The notes beneath the pieces were generated by a model. It had not been told where the DNA came from. It saw only the letters and a list, made by a program, of their open reading frames with translations, and made no database searches. Shown here piece after piece: positions 32,941 to 59,314 of a stretch of 64,000 bases of DNA; position 1 is the first letter of the stretch, and each line of letters begins with the position of its first letter. Where the stretch lies: positions 7,874,001 through 7,938,000 of the forward strand of contig CP075495.1 of NCBI GenBank assembly GCA_021613535.1, read 5' to 3'. Both the position numbers and the translations under genes were made by a program. The DNA is from Adineta vaga (Eukaryota; Animalia; Rotifera).

Positions 32941-34866
32941 ATGGTCGGTCACCTAGAAAAGAGCAAAGGCGATATCAAGTCATTACGCATGTGTCAATTG
33001 TGTAATAGAATTTTGCAAGAATCTTTTAAGCTTTTATGTGGAGATCATATATGTAAATCCTGTATGCAAGGAATAACAGGGTATGATGAAATCAATTATA
33101 TTGTAGAAGTGAATATTTCTTCTTTTTTTTACTAGGAATATTATAAAGTGTCCAAAATGCTCACAAGAAACACACCTCAAACCATTCTGCGAAATCTGTC
33201 GAACAAATTTTTCTTCTAACACGACACTTGACGAACATAAACAAAAAGAATGTACTGGAACTATTGTATCATGCGATCTCAAAGAATATGGATGTTCAGA
33301 CTCAGTAAGTGATAGCCCTCTGTATCAAATTAATGATTAAATTATACTGATCCTAGCTAACATTTTTATTGGGAAATATATATCTAAATGTAGTCAAGAC
33401 ACAATTAAAAGGCTTGAAACCATTCTCCTCTACAGAAGCTTCTAAGAATATCTTTGATAAGAACATGTGAGCTGACCGATGTTGGGTATTAGAAAAAGAG
33501 AAAAATACCTGTAAGGTGTCATCAAATCCGATGGTTTTAATTATTTTCGTTCTCAGCACATTCAGATGAGTTCTTTTTGTGAGGCCAATAATATATATGT
33601 ATTTAAATCAAATGACAAAGCACTCCACGATCTATTTAGATCTATCGAGTACAACTATCTAGCACTATCTGAGTGATGTTCATCAAAATGCGATCATTAA
33701 TGTCATTCGACGTTTACCGTTTAAATCACGTAATGATCAGTTGGAACGGACATCAACTATGGATGTCGATATGGAACCAAGTGGTGTTAGTTCAATGACA
33801 ACTGAAACTCTCAATAGTCAAATGCAAGAGATCTATGAAACAATTAATGTTCTTGCTAGTGGTATTCAAACATTAAATGATGACACACAACGTATTAGTA
33901 GTGATTCTGTTCGATTACAAACATCCATTGAAACAGTAACCCAAGAATGTGCATCCTTGAAGTTGAGTATTCAAGAGCAGAGTGTTTTCCTGAATAGCAG
34001 TAAACAAAAGCAAGATATAGTTCGACAAGAAGTTGCATCAATAAAACAAAAAGTGGATGATACACAATATGTATCATATGATGGCACATATACATGGAAT
34101 ATCAAAAACGTTCGAGAAAAAATGAGTAAGTAGAACGATTTTTAATTTCTTGTCTAATACTGATACATGAACGTTCTTATGAAAACTGTATTCCTTTTTA
34201 TATTTTGTAGATGACGCTCAATCCGAAAGACAAATGTCGATTTATTCACCACCATTCTATTCTTCACCGACTGGTTACAAAATGTGTGCTCGACTGTATT
34301 TACATGGTGATGGTAATGCACGTCGCACTCACATGTCATTGTTCTTTGTTCTTATGCGTGGTCTCAATGATGCAGGGTTGGAATTTCCATTCAACTATAA
34401 AGTGACATTCTGTTTGTATGATCAAACACCTCAACAAAGACATATCATTGATTCATTTCGACCTGACATCAAATCAAATAGTTTTCAACGACCACGATCT
34501 GAAATGAATATTGCCAGTGGTATTCCAAAGTTTTGTCCACTGGTAATGATTCAACAAGAAGGCAATTCATACGTTCGTGATGACGCAATGTTCATTAAAG
34601 TGATGGTGGATTTTGGTGAGATGCCAGAGACATTGTTACCCTATGCATTCAGCTTGAATCCAGGATTACCAATGCACATTCAACAAACAATGATTAGACA
34701 AAGATCCGAACGACAAGCTTCAAGGGAAGCACAAGAACCAACGAAATCGCCACGAACTCATTATGTGACCACAGATACGGAACAAACATTGCTTGCAACA
34801 ATGGAAGTAAATACGGGTGACAATGATCAAGACTCAAACATTGCAACAAATATTGACCGTCCATAA
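32941..34866 (+). CDS. TRAF family adaptor, copy A (RING, one zinc finger missing, coiled coil, MATH); 1-nt frameshift at ~33661 unless a rescue acceptor is used
   Basis: Exons 32941-33080 (CQLC..CGDHICKSC), 33136-33304, 33640/33663-34125 and 34211-34866 (SIYSPPFYSSPTGYKM..LYLHGDG..HMSLFFVLMRG..FPFNYKVTF..SFQRPRSEMNIASG). Confidence 0.8.
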
Positions 34867-35412: not shown

Positions 35413-36565
35413 GTATTTTTGCACACGTGTTCTGCAAACGAAGAATAGATTTCGAATGCTTTCTTTTCTCATAAACATGTTGCAAGTTTCATACTATGAG
35501 ACATAATCTATACTAAATCGAACTCTTTGTTGTTTCGATGATGAAATAAAAAATAAATATGCAAATTTATTGAAATCAATGGTATTATTGAACGAATTGC
35601 ATCATATATAAGTTGAAATAATTCAGAGAAAAGGAAGTCAAATTTTCATCCATCTTTGTTTCATATTTAAAAAGCAATTCATTCTCTACCAACCTTTCTA
35701 AGCTATTTTTGAAACTTTTTTTCTTCTTCTTCGTTACAAGTCAACAAAGCAGTTTCTAAAAGTACGTACTCACCAAAAGAAACTCTTTAGATTAGGTACT
35801 CTCCTCTGTCATTCCCTATCCAATAACAAATCGACAATAAGACATCCAAGTTTATTCCAGTTTACATTATTCATCTAGATAATTTCACTATCTCTACAAT
35901 ATATTTTTATTTTGGAAAAAAGATACAAACTACTTCTACTTCTACATCTACTCAGTATAGCAGCTAATACAAGTGTACGAATATCTTTAAACTTGATTAG
36001 CATAGAACGTCACGTAAGAAGTTGAGATACAGTGTTATGATCAACTAAAAATTGTAAAAGAGTTTATCTATCAACTATTTTTCTTTCGTTACACAATTTT
36101 AATGAAGGAAATAAAGTATTTATCCATCCTAGGGACAACAGTAGAAATGCTTCGGTGAAAACAAACTTCGATTGATTTCGAATTTCGAAATAGTGCAGTT
36201 TGATCAATCCTTCAAACAGTTATTTTCTATTTTGCATTAGTCATCGACACATTTATATTTCTGAGAAGTGACTCTGCGACTTAAGATACAGAAAAGGTAG
36301 ATTTTGCATGTTTTGATTCTTTTTTTTATTGCTATGCGACGCAAAAAATATTTGATCGAAATCACATACTATTTAATTCGCTTCAATTGAAAGTACTGTC
36401 AACAAGTAAACCCGAATATTTTATCGTTCTTTCCAACTCAGTTTGTTGTCTTTATCTTTACATGGCTTTTTCTTTCCTCTGGCGGGGGATGACTCACTTG
36501 GAACTTTCCAAGCCTTTCATACAAAAATGCAAAGTCTGCTGCCTACAGTGTGAAATCAAAAGGTA
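35413..36565 (+). repeat. Outer inverted repeat, left arm (~1.15 kb, partner 54861-56012)
   Basis: Near-identical reverse complement from gtatttttgcacacgtgttctgcaaacg to gcctacagtgtgaaatcaaaaggta. Confidence 0.93.
36490..36509. promoter_or_regulatory. AP-1 plus kB-like composite element, duplicated at 54917-54936
   Basis: TGACTCA-ctt-GGAACTTTCC. The partner arm reads TGACTCA-ctt-GGAATTTTCC. It is followed by a short candidate exon ending aag|gta. Confidence 0.5.
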
Positions 36566-38209
36566 GGTTGTGTTTTATTCTTTGCTTACGCTATAAAAAT
36601 CCTTTCAAAATCTCTTTAAAACGTTGACGAAAGCGTTTTATGAAGTTAACAAACTCTCAAGTCAGCCAGATTTGAAGATTTCCGATAGTTTCTGTCTGGT
36701 CTTTTGTTTACTCTCTCGCTTCCCTAAGGTTTCCGAAAATATGTAACTCAGCAGATATCCATACACATAAATATACTCTACCCCACATCCTCACCCAAAC
36801 CCTCAAGATAACTTTGCTAAGTAGCAAAAAATATCGAAAAACTAGACGTCAGACTTCGTCAGATATGTTTGTTATCGCTAAAAACGAAAAGTGTTTCACT
36901 TTTTCAAATAGTGGTACCATAAAATACTGGTTTTATTCAACCATTACTGCAACGTTTTAGTTTGCTATAAACTACAGTCGATCTTTTGAAGTCTTCGAAT
37001 ACGAAATGCTTTACTTTAACATTTAAAAAAAATGATTACGTAGTCCAAGCATATAAAAAACATGATCACGAAGATCGATCATTTTCATATCAATGTTTCA
37101 ATTGAAAAATCTGAAATTTATGTCACAGACAGAGGTCATGTCAAGCTATGCAAAGAAAAAACAATTATCTCAGTGGCTTTTATATAGGAATTGCAGCTTT
37201 CAACATGTTGTCCGAAAACCTTTTATTACTCATTACTAACAATATCAATTTTGATAATATAAACCTATTTCAAACATGAATTTGTTTACTAATTATTAAC
37301 TTCTCATACTCGAGAAGAATATATATGCAATCCTTGCTATCCAGTATCATTTTAACACACTGTAACACCTCAGTTTTTCTAATACAGAATTTTTGCGGTG
37401 CCGTCATTGAGCGTCATCTTTATTTGAAAGCTCTCAAAAAAAAATTTGATTGGCTACACACTCTCATTGCTTCGCTAAATACACCTTTTTATTTCTTTGA
37501 TAAAATCGTTACTAGCTAGAAATGCATATGCATCCTTGCAATTGCTTCATCCCATAGATTTTCTCACTCATGATATTTTTTTTTAAATTTTGTTTTGTTT
37601 ATTATAGCAAATGAAATTTTATGAAGATGATCATGCCTATTTTCTCCAGTAGATGAGGAGTTCTTCAATACCATTATATATACACATATGAAGGTATTCG
37701 AATGTTCAAACACATAAAAACCTGATAATATCTCTTATATACGCAAAAAATTATCCTGGAAAACTTTCCACAATAGAAGTCATTAAAAGTAGTTAAATTT
37801 CAATCTTTTGTTAAGTTTTTTTCTAAAAATACTATTCGCTGCAGGAGGGTTTCATTGGAGAGCGGTTGGGGTCGCGACGCATCTCCAATCTTTTGAACTT
37901 TTGTTTTTTTAGCATGATATTTTACGGGCATTTTTCCACATTTTCGAAATTTTCATAAATTTTTTATGCCTTTTCTCAGTTTTTTGCACCCCGGAACACA
38001 TTTGATTTGTTGTGACATAGATAAGAACTCGTCAAGTCATGTCACTTTTCCGTTCCCGCTGTTGATAAACGCTCTCACTACCATTCCGCTTATCAAATTA
38101 AGGCAAATAAAATCGAAAAAGGGTACAAAAAAATACAGAAAAGTGAAGTTCTTACATAAAAACTACGTCAAACTAAGAACACTATGTCCTACTTTAGTTT
38201 TATTCAACA

Positions 38210-40191
38210 ATGGTTGGCTTCGACGCCAGGAATAAGAGTTCCATTAATTCTCTCTACATATGTGGAGTATGTAACTTCATTTTACGGGAGCCTTTTCAGC
38301 TCAAATGTGGTCATCGTCAGTGCAAAACCTGTATCGAAGATACTGAAGGGTATACTTATTATCAAACAGCCGATTAGACTATTTAACACTTCTTTTCCTC
38401 TTCATTTAGGGATGTTCTCAAATGTTCAGAATGCCAAGAAGAATCATCGAAAACTGAGGTTGCCATTTCAAACATGTTTCTTCTTCTATGAAATTGTCAT
38501 TCTTTTCTTTTTCACTATTCAGATAATGCCAGATCGTGGTTTTAGAAATGATATGAAAACTCTACCAATTGTTTGTTCACTATGTGAGTGGAATGGCTTA
38601 TTCAAAGACTATGAGGTAACTTTGGAATACACATTCACTGATATTCTTACCATTGATCGACCATATTTATTGCATGAAATTGTGCAGAAGAACTTTATTC
38701 ACATATAAAGCCATCAGCATTTCACTTGTACGTTGTTTTTTGTTCTAGACCCATCTCAATAAAGTACATCCAAATCCTATTTGTGAATTTTGTGGAGAAA
38801 AGTTCACGTCTAATATTCGATTTGATGAACACAAACAAAAGGAATGTCCTAAAATCACAGTGTCTTGTCCACTCAAAGATTATGGATGTTTAGATTCAGT
38901 AAGTTGCAATTATTTATATTAAATAATAACATATGTAAAAGTATCCGAATCTATCCTCAACATCATCTTAATTGCAATGATATGATTGATAGTTTACAAC
39001 GATTTGTTTAGATCTATCGAGTACAACTATCTGAACACTATCTGAGTGATGTTCATCAAAATGCGATCATTAATGTCATTCGACGTTTACCATTTAAATC
39101 ACGCAATGATCAAATACAAAAAACATCAACCACGAACGTTCCTTTAAAGTCTGAAATCCTGAGTTCAACTGTAAGCACACTGGCAACTGAAACTCTCAAT
39201 AGTCAAATGCAAGAAATCTATGAAACAATTAATGTTCTTGCTAGTGGTATTCAAACATTAAATGATGACACACAACGTATTAGTAGTGATTCTGTTCGAT
39301 TACAAACATCCATTGAAACATTAACCCAGGAATTTGCATCCTTGAAGTTGAGTATTCAAGAGCAGAGTGCTTTTCTCGATGGTATCAAGCCAAATCAAGA
39401 AATTCTTCAACAAGAAGTTGCATCAATAAAACAAAAAGTGGATGATACACAATATGTATCATATGATGGAACATTGATCTGGAAGATTACTAGTTTTCAT
39501 GAAAAAATGAGTAAGTTCAGTCTGATGTGTCACCCGTCGAATGTGATCATAAATAGTTGAGAAAAAATAAGAATAAGTCTAAAGAATGATTGATATTTTA
39601 GTGGATGCTCAATCCGAAAGACAAACATCGATCTATTCACCACCATTCTATTCTTCACCGACTGGTTACAAAATGCGTGCTCGATTGTATTTACATGGTG
39701 ATGGTGATGGTGATGGTAATGCACATCGACCTCACATGTCATTGTTTTTTGTTCTTATGCGTGGTCTCAATGATGCAGGGTTGGAATTTCCATTCAACTA
39801 CAAAGTGACATTCTGTTTGTATGATCAAACACCTCAACAAAGACATATCATTGATTCATTTCGACCTGACATCAAATCAAATAGTTTTCAACGACCACGA
39901 TCTGAAATGAATATTGCCAGTGGTATTCCAAAGTTTTGTCCACTGGTAATGATTCAACAAGAAGGCAATCCATACGTTCGTGATGACACAATGTTCATCA
40001 AGGTGATGGTGGATTTTGGTGATATGCCAGAGACATTGTTACCCTATACATTCAGCTTGAATCCAGGATTGCCAATGCATGTTTATCAAACAAAGGTCAG
40101 AGAACAAATACAACTTCTAGCTGATATAGAGCGTAGACAACAAGAAGTGCTCCGTGAAGGAAAAGCAATTCCCAGGTCAATATGGGCATAA
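38210..40191 (+). CDS. TRAF family adaptor, copy B (RING, 2 zinc fingers, coiled coil, MATH), 6 coding exons
   Basis: True ATG at 38210 (MVGFDARNKSSINSLYICGVCNFILREPFQLKCGHRQCKTC). Exons ~38210-38349, 38410-38458, 38523-38615, 38749-38898, 39012-39510 and 39602-40191 splice in frame. Confidence 0.9.
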
Positions 40192-43100
40192 GAAGAAATA
40201 GAACTCTGTTACAAGCGTTTTGTCCATAATACTAAAACAAAATAATTAACAACATTTACGCATTATGTTTCGTTTTTTTTCCAAAAATGTCTAATAGTAT
40301 TGTATGAAAAAAATATTCAAAATTTTTTTTAAATTTGTGATACTGTTTGTATAATAGTCGGTAACTGCATTTTGTGTTCAATTTCGATGCCCTTAGGACT
40401 TCGGTATAATTTGTTTATTCTATCAAAAATGTTCCTATTCTTTCGCTGTATGAAAATATTTTTATTGTAAAACCGGTGTTTCTCTCATGTTTCTGATTTT
40501 ATCGATGGTCCTACAAACGCAACAAAATTAGCTATTCAAAATGATACAGTGCAGCTCTAATCTTTCAAATTAAATTATCCATCATACTACCAAGATGTTG
40601 ATATCACAATTCATTGATAAATATTTTTATTTCCTTATTTTCTAAACATATTTACGTTTTGTGTTTTTTGTGTATTTCTTGCTTTAATAATGAGTTAATT
40701 ATTCTATAATAATGCACATGCATTATGTGTATCTAAAAAAGTTCACTGACTATCTGAAGATATTAAAACTATTTTGAATAAAGTAAAGATTTGCAAACAA
40801 ATCATTGAAAATGAGTTGATTTATTTTTTCTTTAAAACTCATCTCAGTTTTTAAAATGCAGAATATTAAAATGAGAAGTGTAACGATAGAAAACATCAGA
40901 GCAAGTACACCGAAGTAATACTACGCAATAATCACAGCGCCATACGAATAACAACAACTTGAGTAGATAAGATTTCATTTTGAATTAAGTATTAATTCAT
41001 AAGAAAAATGATGATTATGATGACTATGAAGAAGAACATATTTCCAGAATTTGGGTCTCCATCAATTAATATTTGCATGTTTATTTTGATGCTTTTCGAA
41101 GTTTCATATCAGCAATTAATAGACCGGCATCCTGATCCATTATGCTAATTACAGCACGAACCTTAAAGGCAAAATTTATCTTTTCATGAAAACGAAGGGC
41201 AACATTTTAATGAAATTATACATTCTAATTAAAGAGTCTTTATTGACAATGAACACATTAATTATATAACGTCTGCGTAACAAATGCTACAGATGATGTT
41301 AAAAGATGCCCTACATGTCGGTGTTTTTTTGGTGAAAATATTTTCGTATTTTATATGAGGATAATAAATGATGTACATTTTGAAGTGTTTATTGTCCTTG
41401 CTTTGTTCTCTTTGCAATCTATGTAAATAACTCTCATTTTTATATACTACATAGATTTGACCGACATGCTTTTATTTATCTGAAGCACTCTAAAAAAATA
41501 GAAGTAAATTTTCCTCTAATGTTTGTCATGATCATATAAGATGGTTTATTTCCATCCTAATACTGATGTTATATTGTTTGAAAAATGATAAAATATGACA
41601 TGAATTTAGCTAATCTTAGTCCTTATGATCTGTTGTAACGAAACAAAATTATAATCAGTACGAATGAACATTTTCTCAACTAAAAAGTTAGTAGTCTATC
41701 AGAATATTATACACAATCGATTGTCGACTTACTAGTGTATTCTAAAAACATGATATATTGATAAAATCAATTGAGATTTTCAGATTATGATAGTTTTTTT
41801 AAGAGTACATCTTTACAATCAACTTTTCCTATAGATTAACTGATACTGATTCATCTCATTTGTACGTATTGTTTGTTTTGAACGATTTGTTCTAATTCAT
41901 ATTCAATATTTCATTCACTTTTTCTTTAATTATTATATTTTTCCATTGACATCAGTAGTGGGAAAGTATCCTGTGTAGTCGAAAAGAATGAATGGTATAT
42001 TCCTGTAAGGTATCGATAAAAATACGTAGTATTATATTTCATAATAAAAATGTTAGAGAGGGAAAGAAAGAACAATGATTAATAAGAAGTAAATTACAAA
42101 GAAAATACTTTCTTCTCTTCTTCAAGCAAGAGACATGATATTATAGTAAATGCACGCATATTTCTCATTGATTTTATTTTTTCTACATGCACATAAACAC
42201 TCTCAATCGCGATTTCTCTTGAGTATACGAGCGAAGTCATGTCGAATGAAAAAAAAACGCATGCACATGATTGTCTATATGTCTTAAAGCATTAAGTTTC
42301 GTGTATTTGGACAAAATAGCATACTAATATACTACAGGTGATATAGCTATAATTCTAATTACTCGATACAATCGACAAGAATAACTCTCAATAATTTAGT
42401 TAGGAAAACATCCGATATCATAAAACATATTCTACTAGTTTTTTTAAATCGACTCCAAAGTTCGTTCTTTATTCCATATAATATTCGGATATGAAATAAA
42501 AAAGCTATCGTTGTGATCGATAGATGCATTCAATGTTGTTTGTGATATAAACTTACCGAGTAGTTCAAGAGATGAGTGCAAGTTTTTTGTTCGCAATGCT
42601 ATCAATTGTAAGATTAAAAGCTAATGGGACGAGATTAAGATTCGTGGATCAAAAGTAGTCATATTTTTTTTCTTATAAGAATATATATTTGCTTACTCAG
42701 AGTCGACGTAAATGCACTCAAATAGAGAATGGTGTGATAAATTTGAACACAGTTTGAGAATGAACAGTTATTAGGGAAGAAATGAATTATTCCCATTTAC
42801 GAATATAAGTAAAAGAAATGAGTCAGACACATCCGGAATTATTCTTTATTACAGCAGGGAAAATAGAATGAATCACAGACAAATAACACATCTATAAATA
42901 TAAAAATATTCTCATTGTGGATATATGTTAATACTCTTATAAATTCTTCTGCGTACCATCAATCGAAATAAATTTCAAGTTCCGAAACAACATGTACTCA
43001 AAGTAAGTTTAATTCTGACCTCTTCGTTGCATTAAGTAGATTTTATCGTCTATAATCATTTCAATACATCATATCTTTCTGATGTAATTTAGATATCGAA

Positions 43101-44203
43101 TATTCAAAACATTGTCTAAGAAATTATTCATGAGAATATCACGTGTAATATGAATATTTTTAAAGAAACTACTAATAGCAGAGACATCGACAGGTAATCG
43201 CGAGTGAAACGTCTTTTGTGATTCTCTTGGAACTACTCGGAGAGCATTTTTTTATTTTAACGAATCTTTTCAAATTTCAGGTTGTTCAGCTCGATAGACA
43301 AGATTAAAAACAATAGTTTGACTCTTTTCTCATGCATTCATTCATAGGACTAAGCAAGTAAGTACTTCTATCTCGCTGCATCTATCCTTCAACAAGAAGA
43401 TGTTATTGATGCATTTATTCCATTCCTATTAATCGTTCTCACGATAGCACATGTTCGATGTTTTTTCTTTTCAAACAGACGTGAATATGCAATCATATAT
43501 GTCATTTCGATTATCATGTGTGACTACAATAAAACAGTCAATTTGTTAATTCTCGAGTATTTTCGTATAGGTATTATTACAAAGTTAATTTTCTTATTTC
43601 AACATTTTCATTCAAGAATGTCCGAACTCTTTTTTTTATACTGCAAAAATTATTGTCTAAATGGAAGATTAGTTGTGAAATCGCAGATAATTTAAAACAA
43701 ACACACAATGCAATCGGAATCATAATCATTTCCAAGTAGTTACAAGCGTCTGTGAATATATTGATGACATTGGTGTGATGAAATCATTTTCAAATATTCC
43801 AATTATGATTTTGAAAGAAAATGAATGAGTAATGCAATGAAAAAAACTAATTAGTGAAAATGATCGATTACACCGTTTCACTCATTTCAGGGACTTCTTC
43901 AATCGAACAAATGTATTGCTTACTCATTTTTGCCATAGTAGCATGTGAACATTCATTATGATCAAATATTGATGCAGTGAATATTCATAAAGTTCCAAAT
44001 AATTTTTTCGATCGTTTTATTTCTGAAATTTAATTTGAATATTATATTGTACGCATGAATCATTTTTAAAAAGATGAAAATCCTGCATGTATTCTATACA
44101 TATATATCTATGTACTTCGACTCTGAGTAGATCTATCAACATAGTCTTCGATCCTCATCAATCAAAAGAATTCATCTTGTTTCATTTTAAGATTTCATAT
44201 ACA

Positions 44204-45942
44204 ATGGTAGGGATCGATGCTCAGAATATCAACACTTTCGACAACAAATTCATTTGTCACATCTGTTCACTCATTCTTCGCCATCCACTACAAATCAACT
44301 CTTGTGGACATCGATTTTGTCAATCTTGTTTACATATCCACAACCAGTACGTATCACTCATCTATACACATTCATCTTCACTTTATCTCTCATCTATCAT
44401 AGAGCACCCATCAACTGTCCACAATGCCAAACACCAACAACTACAAATCAAGTAAATATATCTTTCTCTCTCTCTCTCTCTTTTTTTGCTCGCCACATTC
44501 GTACAACTCATTTAGATCATGATTGATCGTGGTTTCGATCATGACATGCAAGTGTTACCTATCATCTGCTCACTTTGTCAATGGAGAGGTACTCTAAGTA
44601 CCTATCAGGTAATTTCATTGTGACTTATTTTCCATTCTCTCTCTACCATCTGTCACTCAAACTACACAGGATCATCTTCAACAAACTCATCCACATCAAC
44701 AATGCATCCATTGTCATCAGCAGTTCAGTTTATTCGATCAGCTCAATGAACATATATCAACACAATGTCAACAGATCACTTGTGAATGTGTGTTGAAAGA
44801 TTTTGGTTGCCGTCACCAGGTATGAATGTTGAGTTTACAGTATGAGTTGTGAGTGTCTGTTGTATAGATTGTTCGACATGAAATGTTGCATCATTATCGA
44901 AGTGAAGAACACCAACAGTCTGTGATGAACATTGTTGAACAAATAAAATTACAGTTGCGAGAAGGTCAAATGCTACGGAATGAGCGAGACAATGAAGATG
45001 ACGCGAATGCACTAGTAGAATTGGAAGAAACGCTAAATATCCTGGCAAGTGGTGTTAGAGCATTGAGAGAAGAGAGTGCACAACACAACAGTGGAACAGT
45101 TGAACATGAAACTAATACATCAAGTTTAGTGGCAAATATGTCAAAAGTGAGATCGTTGATCGAAGAGCAGAATTCTCTTTTCGAGGGAACGAAGCTAAAT
45201 TGTACGATATTAAAGGAAGCAATAACATCGCTCGAAGAGGGCCTCGATGATTTGCAGCACGTATCATATGATGGCACATATACATGGAAAATCAAAAACG
45301 TTCGAGAAAAAATAAGTAAGTAGAACGATTTTTAATTTCTTGTCTAATACTGATACATGAACGTTCATATGAAAACTGTATTCCTTTTTATATTTTGTAG
45401 ATGACGCTCAATCCGAAAGACAAATGTCGATCTATTCACCACCATTCTATTCTTCACCGACTGGTTATAAGATGCGTGCTCGATTGTATTTACATGGTGA
45501 TGGTAATGCACGTCGCACTCACATGTCATTGTTTTTTGTTCTTATGCGTGGTCCCAATGATGCAGTCTTGAAGTTTCCATTCAACTACAAAGTGACATTC
45601 TGTTTGTATGATCAAACACCTCAACAAAGACATATCATTGATTCATTTCGACCTGACATCAAATCAAATAGTTTTCAACGACCAAGATCTGAAATGAATA
45701 TTGCAAGTGGAATTCCAAAATTTGCACCTGTGTCAGTGATAGAAGCAGAAGATAGTCCATATGTTCGCGACGACACAATGTTCATCAAAGTGATGGTGGA
45801 TTTTAATAATATGGCAAAAAATTTACTGCCCTATGCGCTTAGTCTCAATCCAGGAATACCAGAACGAGCACAGCAAGAAATGATCGAGAAAGAAAGAGAA
45901 AAACGTGCTAGATCAGATAATCTACAACAGCAACAATCGTAA
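44204..45942 (+). CDS. TRAF family adaptor, copy C, 6 coding exons, intact
   Basis: MVGIDAQNINTFDNKFICHICSLILRHPLQINSCGHRFCQSC..CPQC. Zinc fingers CSLC..HLQQTH and CIHC..H...C..C.....GC..H, a coiled-coil exon, and MATH exon 45401-45942. Confidence 0.9.
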
Positions 45943-46415
45943 TAATAAACACATAATAAGCAATTTATCGACTTCTACAACTTCCTTGTTTTAATAAACT
46001 TGGGAAAACAATATTTCTCCAACCTGAGCAGATGGTTAAACAAGATGTAAATATATTTAGTCAAGAAATCTTCTAAATCTATTGACATGTATAAGTGTGG
46101 CAGTAAAATGTTTTTTTATACTTTTTGTTCAAAACCGAAATCCAGAAATATATAAAAATAAATTTTGAAATAATACAACAATTTGTTATAAAATCTACAA
46201 AGGGTATAGAATGAACTGATTTTCTTTGAAAAACATTTAGGGTGTGATTGATTGTATCTTTCGCTTTTTTCATGTTTATTGAGAAATAAATGCTTTTCAA
46301 TGCCTTATAAACGCAGTTATAAAATTTTCATCATAGTTTTGAAACTGAAAAAAGAAATTTTTAATTTATATTGTTTATTAAGAGTGCTCAAGAATAGCTC
46401 TTCAAGTGTATTTGT

Positions 46416-48096
46416 TCATAACATTTGTTTTTGTATATATCTTGAAATGCCAGGATGGAGACTCACTAACTTTGATAACAATAAGTCCGGCATATCATCA
46501 AAATCCACCATCACTTTAATGAACATTGTGTCATCACGAACGTATGGATTGCCTTCTTGTTGAATCATTGCCAGTGGAAAAAATTTTGGAATACCACTGG
46601 CAATATTCATTTCAGATCTTGGTCGTTGAAAACTATTTGATTTGATGTCAGGTCGAAATGAATCAATGATATGTCTTTGTTGAGGTGTTTGATCATACAA
46701 ACAGAATGTCACTTTGTAGTTGAATGGAAACTTCAAGACTGCATCATTGGGACCACGCATAAGAACAAAAAACAATGACATGTGAGTGCGACGTGCATTA
46801 CCATCACCATGTAAATACAGTCGAGCACGCATCTTATAACCAGTCGGTGAAGAATAGAATGGTGGTGAATAGATCGATGTTTGTCTTTCGGATTGAGCAT
46901 CATCTAAGCATAATATAGAATTCTCATTACGAAAACGAACTATACTAAACATCATTTATACTATAAGTATACCTGAGTTACTTACTCATCTTTTCTCGGA
47001 TGTTTTTGATTTTCCATGTATATGTACCATCGCATGATACAGACTGTGGATCATATATTTTCTCTTCCACTGATATTATATCCTACTTCAAACGTTCCAG
47101 ATTTCCGAAAGAATTTTCCGTTTGCTTGATTTGTTGTTCGATCGATAGTTTGATTTCTGAGACATATTTCAGCAAACTTTGCAATTTAGTGTCTGACTCC
47201 ATTAGTTCATGTTGACACCATCCAATACTTTCGTTTAATACTGCAATATCACTGCTCAAGATATTCAGCATTTCGTAGAACTCTTCCACCGCATTCGTAT
47301 CATCTTCATTGTCTCTTCCATTTCGCCACATTTGAGACTATAGTATCTGTGATTTTATTTGTTCAACAATGTTCATCACAGACTGTTGGTGTTCTTCACT
47401 TCGATAATGATGCAACATTTCATGTCGAACAATCTATACAACAGACACTCACAACTCATACTATAAACTCAACATTCATACCTGGTGACGGCAACCAAAA
47501 TCTTTCAACACACATTCACAAGTGATCTGTTGACATTGTGTTGATATATGTTCATTGAGCTGATCGAATAAACTGAACTGCTGATGACAATGGATGCATT
47601 GTTGATGTGGATGAGTTTGTTGAAGATGATCCTGTGTAGTTCGAGCGAAAGATGGTAGAGAGAGAATGGAAAATAAGTCACAATGAAATTACCTGATAGG
47701 TACTTAGAGTACCTTTCCATTGACAAAGTGAGCAGATGATAGGTAACACTTGCATGTCATGATCGAAACCACGATCAATCATGATCTAAATGAGTTGTAC
47801 GAATGTGGCGAGCAAAAAAAAGAGAGAGAGAGAGAGAGAGATATTTACTTGATTTGTAGTTGTTGGTGTTTGGCATTGTGGACAGTTGATGGGTGCTCTA
47901 TGATAGATGAGAGATAAAGTGAAGATGAATGTGTATAGATGAGTGATACGTACTGGTTGTGGATATGTAAACAAGATTGACAAAATCGATGTCCACAAGA
48001 GTTGATTTGTAGTGGATGGCGAAGAATGAGTGAACAGATGTGACAAATGAATTTGTTGTCGAAAGTGTTGATATTCTGAGCATCGATCCCTACCAT
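46416..48096 (-). pseudogene. TRAF copy D: inverted partner of copy C with two in-frame TAG stops in the coiled-coil exon
   Basis: RING and zinc-finger exons and introns are near-identical to copy C. TAG at 47340-47338 and 47085-47083, both aligned to Glu codons of copy C. The MATH exon (46904-46416) is open. Confidence 0.8.
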
Positions 48097-49386
48097 TGTA
48101 TATGAAATCTTAAAATGAAAGGTAGACCATGTTTGATTTCAATGATAGAGTATGTGTTTACAGGTGCTTGTTTATCTGTGTGATGTATTATATTGCTCTG
48201 CATCATAATTGATTCATTCCTTATAGCATGACAAAATTATGTACCCAATGCAGTAGAAGAAATACAGAGTGCGTCAAAGAAAGGGAAAAGATCCCAAGTT
48301 ACTATAGTTGTCATAGAATTGAGTTGTTTTAATGTCGGTAAAAAACTTGAACTTATATAATTGTTGGTGATCAGCGTGTTCACCAAGGAAAAAGACTTAC
48401 GAATAAAATAATTGACACTTATCTGACATTGTTATATTTCAAGGTATTAATGATATGGTGTTTCTATGGTGTCACTGATATATTCAGACCAACAATACAT
48501 TTTAGCTAGTCGGAATCTACCAACTTTATTTTTTTCTGCGTTTCTTTTTGCACTTAAACACCAATGTGTCATTCAGGAATCATGAGGCGTCTAGCAAAGA
48601 AAACTTCTGTGTTTTTACTTACCGATTAGATCAACAAAAGCGTGGGTCTCGTCAACTTTTACGATTGAAATGTGAAGAAAAAATTATGATAAGCAATCGG
48701 TATATATAGAAACAAATATTAATGCTTCGTTGGAAATTCCATCGGTAGGGTTGTACAAGAGAATTAAATCAAAACATTCCAGTGCTTTATCGTTGAAATT
48801 GACTTCTATCTGTCATATAAATTTCAATAATCGATTCATTCCGTTCTTTCATGGATGTATGTTTTGTTTTTTCGATCTTTAAAGTATTTTTTATTTTAGA
48901 ACATGTAAAACTTATTTGAATATCGCTATAATATATAGAAGCTAAAGAAAACGCAACAATGTAACAATAGTTAGCTTATGAACAAAGAGAACGCAGAATA
49001 TAGTTAATAAAATAGTACAACAATTTCAAATAGTTTGTCAACAGAGTAGATTTTTCAAACTTCATTCCAGATCAATCAATATAGTATCATTTATGTGTGA
49101 TTTTCATTGCTCGATAACTTATAGAGAGAGAAAGAGGATTTTTTTTAATTGTTGGAAATTACAAAAAAATTACATCTAACTGATTTATGTTTAAACTGAT
49201 AGTCGAATATATTTATATCATAGAACGTATATTTTCTAATGCTCAATTAGTATTAATAGATGATGAAAAGACATATAATTTTTTAATGAAATCAGTTCGT
49301 ATAACAATATTATTATTAGAAAAACATTTTATGCGGATATTTTATATTCAGTCAGACTTTCCTCAGAAAATTCTATATATAATAGC

Positions 49387-49458
49387 ATTTACTTCTCACA
49401 AAATAAGCTTAGTATCCTAATGAATTAGAATACTAAGCTTATTTTGTGAGAATTAAAT
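49387..49458. repeat. 72-nt near-perfect palindrome/hairpin
   Basis: atttacttctcacaaaataagcttagtatcctaat-ga-attagaatactaagcttattttgtgagaattaaat: 35-bp arms, 2 mismatches. Confidence 0.9.
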
Positions 49459-50091
49459 AGTGGTGAATGATATATGAAAAATAATCCTCTATATATGTTG
49501 CAAATGTCTTTCTCTGTTTTATCAAACATTAACTTGAACATTTTCCCACTAAGATATGTCATTCTATCGTTATAACGCATGAAATTTATCGGTCTTTTCG
49601 TTAGGTTTTGATGATTTGTTCAAAACTAATTACAAGCGATTTCGAACTCTAACTAAATAAAATTGAATACATTTTCAAAGTTTAATTTTTTCATTTTTGT
49701 TCGCTACTATCTGACAGAATGAATTAATATTAAAAATGGAATATTGGTAGACAGCTTCCTCTGAAGTTTTACGGTTTCATCAGGGTATCTAACAAACATT
49801 TTTATCGAACAATTACAGCCATTGAAGTTTTGTCTACAACTATCGTTTTTATTAACTAAGTATATGTTAGAGTTATGGTAGACGAACTGAGGAAAACATT
49901 TACAACATATATCGAGAACTAATCTACATATATCATTCACTAAACTAACCAAGTTTATACAGAAATATATCTGAAAGAGAAATAGTTCAATCTCAGCAAA
50001 TAAATTATCAGACGTTTTGAAAATGCACATAATTACTATTTTATGATACGACTTCTGGAAGAAAGTTAAAGAGTTTCTCACATAAGTGTTG

Positions 50092-52187
50092 CTACCGAAA
50101 TGTCCCATCATTGTTAATGTTCGTTGAGGCCTGTGCTTCATTGTTATCATTGAGTATATTTAATGGTGGTGGTGGTGATGTAATTGCTGTTAGCGGTAGT
50201 TGTGTTTCATTATTTTGTGTAACACCTGGTAATGCAGCACGAGCTCCTGGTGATGATGGTGTTTGTTGCGCTTGTTGTTGAGCTCGACGATCTGTTTCTT
50301 GTCGGATCATTGTTTGTTGAATATGCATTGGCAATCCAGGATTCAAACTTAATGCATAGGGTAACAATGTCTTTGGCATATCACCAAAATCCACCATCAC
50401 CTTGATGAACATTGTGTCATCACGAACGTATGGATTGCCTTCTTGTTGAATCATTGCCAGTGGAAAAAACTTTGGAATACCACTGGCAATATTCATTTCA
50501 GATCTTGGTCGTTGAAAACTATTTGATTTGATGTCAGGTCGAAATGAATCAATGATATGTCTTTGTTGAGGTGTTTGATCATACAAACAGAATGTCACTT
50601 TGTAGTTGAATGGAAACTTCAAGACTGCATCATTGGGACCACGCATAAGAACAAAGAACAATGACATGTGAGTGCGACGTGCATTACCATCACCATGTAA
50701 ATACAATCGAGCACGCATTTTGTAACCAGTCGGTGAAGAATAGAATGGTGGTGAATAGATCGATGTTTGTCTTTCAGATTGAGCATCCACTAAAATATCA
50801 ATCATTCTTTAGACTTATTCTTATTTTTTCTCAACTATTTATGATCACATTCGACGGGTGACACATCAGACTGAACTTACTCATTTTTTCATGAAAACTA
50901 GTAATCTTCCAGATCAATGTTCCATCATATGATACATATTGTGTATCATCCACTTTTTGTTTTATTGATGCAACTTCTTGTTGAAGAATTTCTTGATTTG
51001 GCTTGATACCATCGAGAAAAGCACTCTGCTCTTGAATACTCAACTTCAAGGATGCAAATTCCTGGGTTAATGTTTCAATGGATGTTTGTAATCGAACAGA
51101 ATCACTACTAATACGTTGTGTGTCATCATTTAATGTTTGAATACCACTAGCAAGAACATTAATTGTTTCATAGATTTCTTGCATTTGACTATTGAGAGTG
51201 TCAGTTGTCACTGTCGTTGTTGTTATCATTGAGCTAGCACCACTTGGTTCCATATCGACATCCATAGTTGATGTCCGTTCCAACTGATCATTGCGTGATT
51301 TAAATGGTAAACGTCGAATGACATTAATGATCGCATTTTGATGAACATCACTCAGATAGTGTTCAGATAGTTGTACTCGATAGATCTAAACAAATCGTTG
51401 TAAACTATCAATCATATCATTGCAAATAAGATGGTGACGGGGATGCACTTAGATAGTTTCACATATATTACTCTTCAATATAAATAATTGCAACTTACTG
51501 AATCTAAACATCCATAATCTTTGAGTGGACAAGACACTGTGATTTTAGGACATTCCTTTTGTTTGTGTTCATCAAGTCGAATATTAGACGTGAACTTTTC
51601 TCCACAAAATTCACAAATAGGATTTGGATGTACTTTATTGAGATGGGTCTAGAACAAAAAACAACGTACAAGTGAAATGCTGATGGCTTTATATGTGAAT
51701 AAAGTTCTTCTGCACAATTTCATGCAATAAATATGGTCGATCAATGGTAAGAATATCAGTGAATGTGTATTCCAAAGTTACCTCATAGTCTTTGAATAAG
51801 CCATTCCACTCACATAGTGAACAAACAATTGGTAGAGTTTTCATATCATTTCTAAAACCACGATCTGGCATTATCTGAATAGTGAAAAAGAAAAGAATGA
51901 CAATTTCATAGAAGAAGAAACATGTTTGAAATGGCAACCTCAGTTTTCGATGATTCTTCTTGGCATTCTGAACATTTGAGAACATCCCTAAATGAAGAGG
52001 AAAAGAAGTGTTAAATAGTCTAATCGGCTGTTTGATAATAAGTATACCCTTCAGTATCTTCGATACAGGTTTTGCACTGACGATGACCACATTTGAGCTG
52101 AAAAGGCTCTCGTAAAATGAAGTTACATACTCCACATATGTAGAGAGAATTAATGGAACTCTTATTCCTGGCGTCGAAGCCAACCAT
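50092..52187 (-). CDS. TRAF family adaptor, copy E (inverted partner of copy B), intact, long Q/P/N-rich tail
   Basis: ATG at 52187. Same exon structure as copy B. MATH exon 50789-50092 reads GDGNARRTHMSLFFVLMRGPNDAVLKFPF. Confidence 0.9.
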
Positions 52188-54860
52188 TGTTGAATAAAAC
52201 TAAAGTAGGACATAGTGTTCTTAGTTTGACGTAGTTTTTATGTAAGAACTTCACTTTTCTGTATTTTCTTGTACCCTTTTTCGGTTTATTTGCCTTAATT
52301 TGATAAGCGGAATGGTAGTGAGAGCGTTTATCAACAAAGTCAACACCAACACCTGGAATGTGAAAGTGATTTGATTTGTCATGATCTTAGCTTATTTACA
52401 GCGAATGAGGCTTTTTATGGAAAATTTCACAAAAGATGCAAACTTAACATATTCTAATAAATTCTGTTTACAAAAAAATTCGTGGCAAATTTTCTATGTT
52501 CATAAAAAAAAGAAATAGCAGATGTCGTTGATATCTTAAAACGTATGAACATTTTCTATGTACATAATATATGTGATACTGTCTATGACTGACAGTCTAT
52601 TGTTCATTGAGAAAAAAAGTAATCAAATAAAAGAAGATAAGAAAAATGGCTAAAATGCATTGAAAGCACTTTTGAAAATATGTTGTCCCATTATTTTGGT
52701 GGCCATTTGAGGATTTAAATAATAATGAATTGTATTCTATACTCTTATAATCTTAAAGTTCTCTAGCCTATTTTTAACAATGAGCATCAGAAGAGAAAAA
52801 TTAATGAAGCGTGCGTGAGTGTATTGTTTGATTTAGGGATGAATGTAGAATTTATACCAGGCATGAGAGATGAACCATTGAAATCAGCTTTTTGACATCA
52901 AGAATCAAAACTATCTTCATCTTATTCGACGACATTATTATTTGATGACAATGGACGATCTAATTTCCCAAAAATCCCAAGTTTTCTTGTTATATCACTA
53001 ATCGTTATGTCTGCATTATAATGAGATTAGGATCTGATATGGAAAGAAATTTTGTATTCGAAAAAAGGCAAATCAATACACCGAGGACTTTGTAAGGAAG
53101 TGAAGAATAGAAAAAATAAGAGTAAAAGAACGAAAAGGAGGAAGAAAAAACGTCACCATATCGCGTTACCAAACAAAAATGTCAAAAGAAACTAAAACGT
53201 TCTAACTAGAATATATCAACATCCATCAATGTATGTAGTGATATACGAATATCAGTTTTTTTTCTACGAACGAACGGTTTATCTAGAGTACTATTATCGT
53301 TGACCAAACTGTTTCGAGAATAATTGTATTTTCTTTTTCGAAATAAAAGAAAAAAAGAAACGCGATACAGTATAGAGATCACACAATAAAATAGAAGAAA
53401 CAAATAATTAATGATGAATGCTGTGGATATTGTGCTGTTCCATTTTGTTGATACAGAGAGTACATTCGTAGATGTTGTTATGAAGAAAGTAGCAGAATTT
53501 AATTGTGATTATTGATAATGAAGAAGAATACCATCAAAAGAGGCATTTTTCATAGACTGTACGTTCTAGGTTATTACGATTCTTATGTCGACAATGTGGA
53601 TCTTATTCTAGTGCCTAAGACATTACGCTTCAACAATATTTTATTATACTTGATGAATACGAATGACTGCACACAGATATAAATTTAAGCTAAATGAAAG
53701 TATCAGCCACGTTCATCGTCTTCTTATGTAGAGTACGATGAGTTTTATCTCTACGTGAGTTCAGTCAAATTAAAAATAAATATGTGATAATTCAATTATA
53801 TAACTCGTAAATAATACTCATTGGATGTCAAAATAAGATATGCATAGCTGCACGAAAAGACATGATTTTTTCTGAGTAGTGACAAATACTTTTGCCCTTT
53901 TCGTCCACAATACAAAGTACAAAGCGTGATTTTTTTTTCGATAAAAAATACTGCATATAAGGACATCAGGTGCAAACTATACTGAGCAGAAACAGAATTC
54001 CTAAAATATGTCGATATTGATAAAGTATGCTCGCATGTATTTTTGACTTAACCGATGTTAATAACAATAAAAAAAATACTCATTAATCGCATTTAAAACT
54101 ATTTGAATTGTTTAATCGTTTATCTCATTGGAATCAAAACTTAGCATTACTACTAAATATCTATCACTATAACTAGACAGAGATGACGAATAAAAATTAG
54201 CAGAGAAAAAAATCTAAAACAGTATGTGAATAATGAATATTTTTCAGTATAATCTATCGTCTAGCGAACGATATGCGTAAATCTGAGAGTTGTAAATGAC
54301 AACACCAACCAATCCTTGGTTGCAAATCAGATATTTGGATAACCTACACAAATGTATAAAATAAGGAAAAGATAATTTTTTGTAACTAATTACATGACTG
54401 TAGGATTCTGTGAACGAGATCATGAACCGATAGATAAACACCTTCGAATCGCATGGCATCCTTTTTATTATTTTATTCTCTAAAAATTTGTTGTATTTTT
54501 CTTGAGAAAAGAAACGTCTTTAATGTCCGGAAGTGCATTATTTTCAATAATCTACGAATGTATCCTAATCTATAGGCACTTATTGATTGAACAATGAACG
54601 AATTTCGTTCACATTCATATAGATTTGAATTAAAATACAAATGGATGTTTTGATACTAATAATTTCTATTAAATCTTAGAATGTAGAATCTTAAACATTG
54701 ATTATTAGACTTCACTTATACATGAGATGAATGACTCATGGACATCTATCGCTATGAGCGAAGTGAAGATGATTCAAAAGTGATTCACAAACACTTGTTG
54801 TCTAATAGAAATATTCACAAATTCTTACGTAAAAACTACCCAAATAGATGAACAATAACG

Positions 54861-56012
54861 TACCTTTTGATTTCACACTGTAGGCAGCAGACTTTGCATT
54901 TTTGTATGAAAGGCTTGGAAAATTCCAAGTGAGTCATCCCCCGCCAGAGGAAAGAAAAAGCCATGTAAAGATAAAGACAACAAACTGAGTTGGAAAGAAC
55001 GATAAAATATTCGGGTTTACTTGTTGACAGTACTTTCAATTGAAGCGAATCAAATAGTATGTGATTTCGATCAAATATTTTTTGCGTCGCATAGCAATAA
55101 AAAAAGAATCAAAACATGCAAAATCTACCTTTTCTGTTTCTTATATCGCAGAGTCACTTCCTAGAAATACAACTGTATCGACGACTAATGCAAAATAGAA
55201 AATAACTGTTTGAAGGATTGATCAAACTGCACTATTTCGAAATTCGAAATCAATCGAAGTTTGTTTTCACCGAAGCATTTCTACTGTTGTCCCCAGGATG
55301 GATAAATACTTTATTTCCTTCATTAAAATTGTGTAACGAAAGAAAAATAGTTGATAGATAAACTCTTTTACAATTTTTAGTTGATCATAACACTGTATCT
55401 CAACTTCTTACGTGACGTTCTATGCTAATCAAGTTTAAAGATATTCGTACACTTGTATTAGCTGCTATACTGAGTAGATGTAGAAGTAGAAGTAGTTTGT
55501 ATCTTTTTTCCAAAATAAAAATATATTGTAGAGATAGTGAAATTATCTAGATGAATAATGTAAACTGGAATAAACTTGGATGTCTTATTGTCGATTTGTT
55601 ATTGGATAGGGAATGACAGAGGAGAGTACCTAATCTAAAGAGTTTCTTTTGGTGAGTACGTACTTTTAGAAACTGCTTTGTTGACTTGTAACGAAGAAGA
55701 AGAAAAAAAGTTTCAAAAATAGCTTAGAAAGGTTGGTAGAGAATGAATTGCTTTTTAAATATGAAACAAAGATGGATGAAAATTTGACTTCCTTTTCTCT
55801 GAATTATTTCAACTTATATATGATGCAATTCGTTCAATAATACCATTGATTTCAATAAATTTGCATATTTATTTTTTATTTCATCATCGAAACAACAAAG
55901 AGTTCGATTTAGTATAGATTATGTCTCATAGTATGAAACTTGCAACATGTTTATGAGATAAGAAAGCATTCGAAATCTATTCTTCGTTTGCAGAACACGT
56001 GTGCAAAAATAC
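54861..56012 (-). repeat. Outer inverted repeat, right arm (partner 35413-36565)
   Basis: Reverse complement of the left arm with only scattered substitutions and small indels. Confidence 0.93.
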
Positions 56013-58023: not shown

Positions 58024-59314
58024 CTAATGAGTAAGAATATTACTGTTTGGTAATCCCGATCTGATCTTTGTAGAAGATCTTTGTGCTGTACGAACGCTAA
58101 TAGATCCATCTTTGTTATGTACGACAAGAAGACTATATTGTTCTTCATTTTCCATCTGATTCGATACGGATTGACTATTTAATGTATTTAAATTAACAAA
58201 ACTAAATTGATATTGAGTTGATGTACAAATATAAAGTAATGGAATCCATATGACTGATGATTTAGCAAAACAAGCACATAGAAATGTGGCTAATGGCGAT
58301 ACTGCATAATCTTTACCTTGAAATGCTGAAACAAATAATGTAATAGCATACGGTGTCCAAGTGAAAATAAAACCACATGTTGTAATAACTATACCTAAAT
58401 GATAGATAAAAGTAAATAGTTCATTGATTGATGTCTTACTTTTAACTATACGTCGTTCCATTTCAAGACGTTTTCGACTAAGTAAAATATTGATACCATG
58501 TTCGATTTTATTACGCATACTTTTCAAACCAAAGAAAGTTATAGAATTCGAAACGAAAAGAATTATTAATGGTATAGCATATACAAATATAAATAGAAAA
58601 TATGTAAATGACACATATGAAAAACGTCGATCATACCAATTGATACAGCATGATGTACGAGCGCCCTAGAAATATAGTTCATATCATTCATTTTTTAATA
58701 TTTTTTTAAAACTAAAACGAACTTCCATCGTATATTCATTCCATCCAAGAATAGGTAAAATTGACCAAATAAAAGCAATAAATACAGCAAAACATGAGAT
58801 AACGACCGATTTTTTAATCTAAATTTTTTTTATAGAAAATCTTCTATCATCGTACAAACTATTGCTGACTTACTGTAATACTGTTAGCCTTATATGGACA
58901 TATAATAATATAGCATCGACTCATACTAACAACACAGAGTAAATAAGAACTTGAACATCCATATAAAAATGCTATAAGTGCACTCAATTGACAACCTGTA
59001 CGTGCATATAACCATTTGCAATAGATTGATGATGTACCAGTTAGTGGTAGAATTGTACATGATGCGATAAGACCCATAATTGCAATAAATAGAACATACA
59101 AATTCGATGTTGAACGAAGTGCTTTATATCGAATAAAACTGTAAATCAGAACTCCATTTAATAGAATGCCAATAAATGCTGAAATACATAAGAGTATGCC
59201 GATAATACGAACGATATCACAATTAATAGGTGTTGGTCGACTCCAGAAGAATGGATCAGTTAAAGAAAGATTTTCATCGAGTATTACAGAATAGTTGAAC
59301 CAGTTGAACGACAT
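58024..59314 (-). CDS. Opsin-family GPCR, 4 exons
   Basis: Exons 59314-58874, 58818-58723, 58666-58440 and 58394-58024. PILGWNEYTME/GARTSCCINW (E181-equivalent), TWTPYA, and TM7 FAKSS with the retinal-binding Lys (codon 58263-58261). Confidence 0.88.

Follow-up and report, generated by a model that had tools for sequence, protein, structure and literature searches.

Is a nested, gene-bearing palindrome in a bdelloid rotifer genome a genuine feature of the chromosome and, if so, what has made parts of its arms identical? We address this question for a cluster of TRAF2/3-like adaptor genes in Adineta vaga, which lies in a window of 64 kb (chromosome 2, 7874001-7938000). The window is the whole stretch of DNA analysed, and coordinates are positions within it unless another sequence is named. 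Bdelloid rotifers are textbook ancient asexuals, and the palindromes of the first genome were once taken as proof of ameiotic evolution. Those of the first A. vaga draft have since been recognised as mis-scaffolded phased haplotypes and were not recovered in the new assembly (PMC8494291). The TRAF palindrome resembles them in species group and in presenting gene-bearing inverted repeats on one scaffold, whereas the draft palindromes were large, collinear and allele-like and the present one consists of paralogues with unrelated spacers in a chromosome-level assembly. It is small but apparently real, and it differs in nature from those that were withdrawn. Our preferred explanation, which we hold to be probable, is that of a genuine gene-family palindrome: an old inverted segmental duplication, homogenised in patches by non-allelic gene conversion.

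Anatomy of the palindrome and its genes

The palindrome totals 20.6 kb and was resolved by repeat search and self-BLAST into three nested pairs of inverted blocks, collinear and mirrored. The outer pair (35413-36569 / 56012-54857) is 98.7% identical over 1157 bp with 1 gap, the middle pair (38060-40122 / 52336-50281) 94.9% over 2071 bp, and the inner pair (44180-45813 / 48120-46491) 87.1% over 1654 bp. These mirrored arms flank a unique, AT-rich centre of about 0.63 kb (45862-46490), which lies between the 3' ends of the innermost genes and is not itself palindromic. A first-pass annotation of this DNA had outlined the same three pairs and had described the spacers between them as unequal and unalignable, with faint decayed similarity beside the block edges; all of this is borne out. 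Spacer 1 measures 1.49 kb on the left (36570-38059) against 2.52 kb on the right (52337-54856), and spacer 2 measures 4.06 kb (40123-44179) against 2.16 kb (48121-50280). Left and right counterparts show no similarity at a BLAST word size of 7, save for decayed matches just upstream of the middle block. There, roughly collinear homology spans about 400 bp of spacer 1 (37675-37841 against 52571-52399, 64%, E-value 8e-11; 38005-38056 against 52406-52355, 67%).

The spacers have no further copies in the 100.8 Mb genome, apart from three weak matches to 36594-37246. This segment, confined to the left arm, matches sequence on chromosomes 1, 2 and 5 at 70-73% and may be a small repeat fragment. No open reading frame (ORF) bearing a Pfam domain was found in the outer blocks, the spacers or the centre, and no Rfam family was matched across 32-58 kb.

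Five TRAF2/3-like genes occupy the cluster, A, B and C on the plus strand and D and E on the minus strand, and by protein sequence they form two old types: type I (A, B and E) and type II (C and D). The arrangement is I(+) II(+) / II(-) I(-); each type I gene in the palindrome is preceded upstream by a non-coding block, and A lies outside. Domain searches were conducted exon by exon, and joined spliced models served for a local reading-frame check only. TRAF A (32941-34866) is a mosaic that lacks the zinc-finger exon 3. TRAF B (38210-40191), whose homology to E covers 38060-40122, and its partner TRAF E (50092-52187) have open six-exon models of 506 and 544 codons, respectively, in that local check. 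TRAF C (44204-45942) has a unique GT-AG model of six exons and 474 codons, with introns 3 and 5 backed by joints in RNA contigs; because these contigs show introns of 61 nt and about 85 nt removed, the gene is transcribed and spliced. TRAF D (46416-48096) shares the exon structure of C and carries two in-frame TAG stops, at 47340-47338 and 47085-47083, both in the unconverted part of exon 5. The stretch is reproduced by zero-mismatch contigs over 46872-47381 in two independent DNA runs (X2 and X4), and TRAF D is, on the strength of these confirmed stops, probably a pseudogene. The genome, in six contigs, has a GC content of about 30%; introns at the locus are 48-133 nt long, and the nearest proteins come from Adineta and Rotaria.

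The domains appear to follow the canonical order of TRAF2, TRAF3 and TRAF5 adaptors, from a RING finger and a TRAF-type zinc finger through a coiled coil to TRAF-C/MATH. In A, C and E, PF21355 matches MATH at E-values between 7e-41 and 1e-40 (1e-40 in A), and a genome-wide PF21355 search matches all five genes. The nearest solved relative of this domain is human TRAF2 (E-value 7e-46), followed by TRAF1, TRAF3 and TRAF5, with TRAF4 and TRAF6 far behind, which places it in the TRAF1/2/3/5 class. Its amino-acid identity to Rotaria and Adineta proteins is 85-96%. The RING exons score 22.9-23.7 bits for zf-C3HC4 (cut-off 21) and match TRAF3_RING at E-values of 5e-4 to 8e-4. In the same exon-level search, in which these domains are split by introns, zf-TRAF reaches 25.3 bits in exon 4 of B, just below the 27-bit cut-off, is weaker in A and was not found in exon 4 of C. 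Exon 5, the long, putative coiled-coil exon, returns weak coiled-coil-type Pfam matches only. An immune role for the cluster is putative, by homology to TRAF2/1/3/5, and any signalling role would be so too; the literature yielded nothing relevant on bdelloid TRAFs or on TRAF gene conversion, and no functional data on any bdelloid TRAF.

Identity in patches across genes and non-coding sequence

Identity along the block pairs is bimodal, with tracts near 100% lying beside tracts of roughly 50-65%. Between B and E, sliding identity is 64-67% upstream, 99-100% at 38072-38900, about 68% at 39073-39170, 100% at 39217-39650 and 91-98% in the MATH exon. Between C and D, the 5' 770 bp (44180-44949) contain 8 differences, dense differences start at 44950, and the rest of exon 5 and intron 5 remain at about 50-57%; the first two-thirds of the MATH exon (45402-45640) are again 96-100% identical, dropping to 61-91% toward its 3' end. 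The tracts disregard coding boundaries. Introns 1, 2, 3 and 5 of B and E agree at 348 of 348 positions, and introns 1-4 of C and D at 222 of 228, with intron 5 of the latter pair at 45%. Arm identity is thus far above that of neighbouring unconverted homologous sequence, at neutral sites too, as is expected of arm-to-arm gene conversion. Unconverted parts of B/E and of C/D are 32-55% diverged, which is comparable to the divergence seen here between species and between homoeologues, and the duplications must for this reason be much older than the identical tracts.

The exchange of sequence extends beyond the inverted partners. Over 34073-34212, the identity of TRAF A to C is 98%, against 51-66% to B and E; over 33651-33794 its identity to E is 94-97%, with B at 68-71%; and it matches both B and E at 97-100% over 33832-33932. 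The MATH exon of D is 94% identical to that of E. Runs of concordant polymorphic sites were longer than in permutations (p<=0.0005) in 7 of the 10 gene pairs.

Homogenisation across types is seen in the MATH exon. Within the window, its identity between types is 80-90% (80-88% at third-codon positions), as against 70% between types I and II on chromosome 5 (52% at third-codon positions); third-codon identity between homoeologues, or between the chromosome 5 types, is 52-58%. A protein tree of exon 5 separates types I and II across four loci (support 94/96), and the approximately unbiased (AU) test rejects monophyly of the local five (p-AU 1e-4). In the tree of MATH exons, the five local copies group together (95/94) and a type II clade is rejected (p-AU 3e-74). 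Since the two trees conflict, the adjacent exons have different histories. Judging from these alignments and trees, type I copies have overwritten the type II MATH exon, with the exception of its 3' end in C, still type II-like.

The first-pass annotation had proposed an old inverted duplication subject to arm-to-arm conversion and had regarded uniform identity along the arms as incompatible with that proposal. Sliding identity proved bimodal instead, and together with the intron identities, the permutation test and the AU-tested conflict between trees it supports the proposal. The accompanying suggestion that it is functional blocks that conversion preserves does not survive, as the tracts also cover TRAF D, with its two stops, and the non-coding outer block, for which no counterpart is detectable at the homoeologous locus or in two further bdelloid contigs. 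Nor does the idea of a self-diversifying locus find support, since the pattern across the cluster is mostly one of homogenisation and reshuffling of existing variants.

The outer block (left copy 35413-36569, right copy 54857-56012) is present in exactly two copies in the genome and is sharp at both edges. Its arms differ at 15 positions, 10 of which fall within 45 bp (36243-36287), and one stretch of 664 bp contains no difference. It lacks a long ORF, any ORF with a Pfam domain and any Rfam match, and neither the homoeologous locus on chromosome 5 nor the two further bdelloid contigs contained a detectable counterpart. The AP-1 and kB-like sites previously reported in it do exist, as one TGACTCA (36490) and one GGAACTTTCC (36500), 10 bp apart in both arms; as single matches, however, they are at the level expected by chance against shuffled sequence (P 0.11 and 0.05). 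The inner edge of the block (36560-36569 / 54857-54866) resembles a splice donor, AAAAG|GTAGGTT on the left and AAAAG|GTACGTT on the right, and a pyrimidine-rich acceptor (38186-38210) lies 14 nt before the ATG of TRAF B. Because of this pairing of edge and acceptor, the block may be a candidate promoter and 5' exon of B and E with a 5' intron of 1.6-2.6 kb, in which case the left spacer 1 would be an intron in the 5' untranslated region (UTR) of TRAF B.

Related loci and the weighing of explanations

Contigs 2 and 5 are homoeologous in this region, in the sense described for the six-chromosome A. vaga assembly (PMC8494291), and the chromosome 5 locus adjoins a partner of SNX17 that is 56% identical. 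A comparison with this homoeologue, which the first-pass annotation had recommended, shows that it too has convergent TRAFs with arms 96-99% alike. Its cluster consists of T1 (type I) and T2-T4 (type II) in the order I(+) II(+) II(+) II(-), where T2 with a neighbouring ORF is inverted relative to T4 with the same ORF, and within the arms about 500 bp cannot be aligned. A contig of A. ricciae has the order I(+) II(-) I(-), with its type I pair inverted and 93.4% identical, and a bdelloid-like ENA contig (GC 44%), syntenic by way of a G-protein-coupled receptor (GPCR) gene, has I(+) I(+) II(-). At each of these loci the arms are 83-100% alike, as against 68-83% between counterparts of different loci. 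The genome holds about 39 MATH exons, and inverted neighbours occur among them only in the two homoeologous clusters; in this confinement to one homoeologous locus pair, the clustered and inverted members differ from other lineage-specific TRAF expansions of invertebrates. A search returned 1105 close relatives, mostly from bdelloids.

Two anciently diverged TRAF2/3-like types would, on our preferred explanation, have been laid out by inverted segmental duplication, after which homologous islands would have been overwritten repeatedly by non-allelic (interlocus) conversion. Exchange would have run between inverted arms (B with E, C with D, outer left with outer right) and between direct copies (A with B, A with C, D with E), as sequence outside the tracts diverged or turned over until it could not be aligned. 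Such a process would yield mosaic genes, a MATH (receptor-binding) exon homogenised across the five copies regardless of type, and a dead D with near-identical tracts. The genome undergoes repeated breakage and repair, and conversion may be a by-product of recombinational break repair.

We favour an old architecture with concerted evolution because three other loci hold convergent TRAFs with arms alike. The inverted arrangement might then predate Adineta speciation or the genome duplication. Nevertheless, MATH-exon copies group by locus and exon-5 copies group within types by genome, and the latter grouping is also expected from repeated, lineage-specific inverted duplication. That the arrangement is older than speciation seems to us slightly less probable than the contrary.

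Several observations weigh against our explanation, and some of them favour its principal rival, a series of young, lineage-specific inverted duplications (by fold-back or templated break repair) in which spacers came to differ by large indels, with no long-lived palindrome and little conversion. In the tree of exon 5, C and D form a sister pair with respect to A. ricciae R2 and the copies on chromosome 5; A, B and E cluster together within their species, as do R1 and R3. Such trees are as compatible with inverted duplications specific to each lineage as with an ancestral palindrome that underwent conversion earlier. The razor-sharp edges of the outer block, which lack any leftover flanking similarity, would also fit a one-off templated copy. 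The rival is further favoured by the variation in copy number and order among the four loci and by a Mutator-like transposon in the chromosome 5 cluster, which attests to turnover by insertion. Young duplications leave unexplained, however, why tracts of 100% abut tracts of 45-68% inside one set of exons and introns, why the best partner switches along a gene, and why the type II MATH exon groups with local type I copies. They would further require that spacers be replaced in full at least four times at this locus, with additional replacements on chromosome 5. We regard this rival as unlikely, if still deserving of consideration.

An artefact of assembly, in which two haplotypes or a chimeric long read were joined in inverted orientation, has in its favour that the palindromes of the older A. 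vaga assembly were artefacts (PMC8494291). The public runs were used as short contigs (200-600 nt) over 43500-49499, among which no single molecule was seen to cross the centre or a whole arm, a further point against a genuine palindrome. Two DNA runs from separate studies nonetheless tile 29/30 and 28/30 of the depth bins in this interval. Phased heterozygous variants are found in the right spacer (49243-49307) and a heterozygous 1-nt indel in the centre (46265) in two DNA runs, which would not be expected of arms that were each a single haplotype. Alleles would, moreover, be collinear, whereas the spacers here are unrelated and of unequal length; the genes of the two arms are unlike in structure and condition (stops in D, different tails in B and E); and the homoeologous locus and two assemblies made independently contain similar convergent pairs of TRAF genes. 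We therefore consider an artefact very improbable. An exact look-up of the exon-6 ORF of TRAF C returned no independent assembly of the whole palindrome on record. Two contigs, found in run X4 only, join 44096 and 45886 to chromosome 3, an observation that our explanation does not account for. Contig depth was set aside as a measure of copy number: in two runs the identical core of C and D is covered roughly twice as deeply as unique parts, a ratio that a haplotype join would also give, and contig depth is unreliable. Samples seemed to differ as to which version of an arm they contained; we attribute this to bubble-popping in the contigs and make no claim from it.

Likeness of the arms might alternatively reflect purifying selection on conserved coding sequence and on a conserved enhancer in the outer block. 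In its favour are the conservation of MATH across bdelloid genera, at the amino-acid identities given above, and the adjacent TGACTCA / GGAACTTTCC pair in both outer arms. Introns and third-codon positions are, however, as identical as replacement sites, and a copy with premature stops carries the same tracts, so that for the coding blocks this explanation is already largely refuted. The outer block, for its part, is undetectable at the homoeologous locus or in other species, and its differences are clustered rather than spread as they would be under constraint. We give selection as a whole very little credence. Still harder to credit is the notion of a giant TRAF-bearing transposon with the outer blocks as its terminal inverted repeats. 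Inverted termini of 1.16 kb at 98.7% are suggestive of one, as is the Mutator-like element with perfect 592 bp inverted termini at the homoeologous locus. But the pair is the only one in the genome, no transposase or integrase ORF lies inside it, there is no target-site duplication at its outer edges, and the cluster is syntenic with its homoeologue and with another bdelloid contig; a transposon origin of the outer block was rejected on the first three of these grounds.

A more ambitious reading would join these elements into a device. The inverted TRAF architecture would be ancient, selectively retained and older than both the bdelloid genome duplication and Adineta speciation; conversion would share one receptor-binding MATH module among adaptors with different effector halves (RING, zinc finger and coiled coil); dead copies such as D would act as a reservoir of donors; and the type I pair would have the outer block in common as promoter and 5' exon. 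If true, this would amount to a germline counterpart, in an asexual animal, of pseudogene-templated diversification. We think it improbable.

Conversion within palindromes and tandem families is familiar from other systems. The ampliconic palindromes of primate sex chromosomes have arms kept near-identical by arm-to-arm conversion, and the TRAF palindrome resembles them in its inverted arms, unique spacer, multi-copy genes and comparable inverted pairs in related species. It differs in scale (arms of about 10 kb against tens of kb to Mb), in the patchiness of its identity (45-100% against >99.9% throughout), in that most of each arm is no longer homologous, and in that direct copies beyond the palindrome are reached by conversion as well. 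Small inverted or tandem gene families that evolve in concert, such as the inverted Hsp70 pair of Drosophila, and RHD/RHCE or the globins, where conversion is restricted to exons, offer parallels in tract length (interlocus tracts of 0.1-1 kb), mosaic paralogues, grouping by species over orthology and homogenisation of parts of genes. In the TRAF cluster, by contrast, sharing between the two old types is confined to one exon, a pseudogene is involved, and a non-coding block 1.5-2.5 kb upstream forms a separate homogenised island.

The process is thus already known and current concepts are unchanged; the value of the locus is that of a well-characterised example. With its sharp tract edges, converted pseudogene and single exon homogenised across types, it affords a clean, testable view of non-allelic conversion. 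As the genome's largest TRAF cluster, it also lends itself to the question of whether innate-immune adaptors are shaped by conversion. It may serve as a marker locus for conversion rates among isolates, mainly for those who study bdelloid recombination and the evolution of gene families.

Neighbouring sequence and further observations

The two junctions in run X4, at 44096 and 45886, exactly bound a segment made up of TRAF C and the 84 bp upstream of it. On chromosome 3 (L009/L010, C3:3172340-3172448) the contigs run into unique sequence that flanks a 49 bp gap on both sides; this site has no homology to the window. The contigs could represent an ectopic fragment of the centre plus a TRAF in that sample, another rearrangement, or chimeras.

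On the right, spacer 2 overlaps the 3' tail of TRAF E and is transcribed at 48867-49499, where RNA-like contigs from two runs lie 0.6-1.2 kb past the TRAF E stop on the minus strand, without a convincing ORF. This transcript is either a long 3' UTR of TRAF E or a separate transcript. Its left counterpart holds no family-matching ORF, has no other copy in the genome and bears no likeness to it.

In the chromosome 5 cluster, a Mutator-like element (MULE; C5:10532187-10536238) is bounded by perfect inverted repeats of 592 bp (L005:7187-7778 / L006:647-1238), between which ORFs match a Mutator-like transposase (PF20700, E-value 3e-9). The innermost inverted pair of that locus, considered as a third nested arm, was rejected in that it consists of the terminal repeats of this transposon. 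Just downstream of T2 and of T4 lies an ORF of 220 residues resembling a seven-transmembrane protein and lacking a Pfam match (L004:6616-7275, minus strand; L006:3757-4416, plus strand). It is 100% identical in both chromosome 5 arms and has no counterpart in the window.

The palindrome and TRAF A are flanked by a gene for an SNX17-like sorting nexin (29800-31113, plus strand), with PX and FERM domains, 437 aa and apparently intronless, and by a rhodopsin-family GPCR gene (58024-59314, minus strand). In the chromosome 5 homoeologue, the SNX17 block is found at the opposite end of the TRAF cluster, a placement that would fit an inversion of the block.

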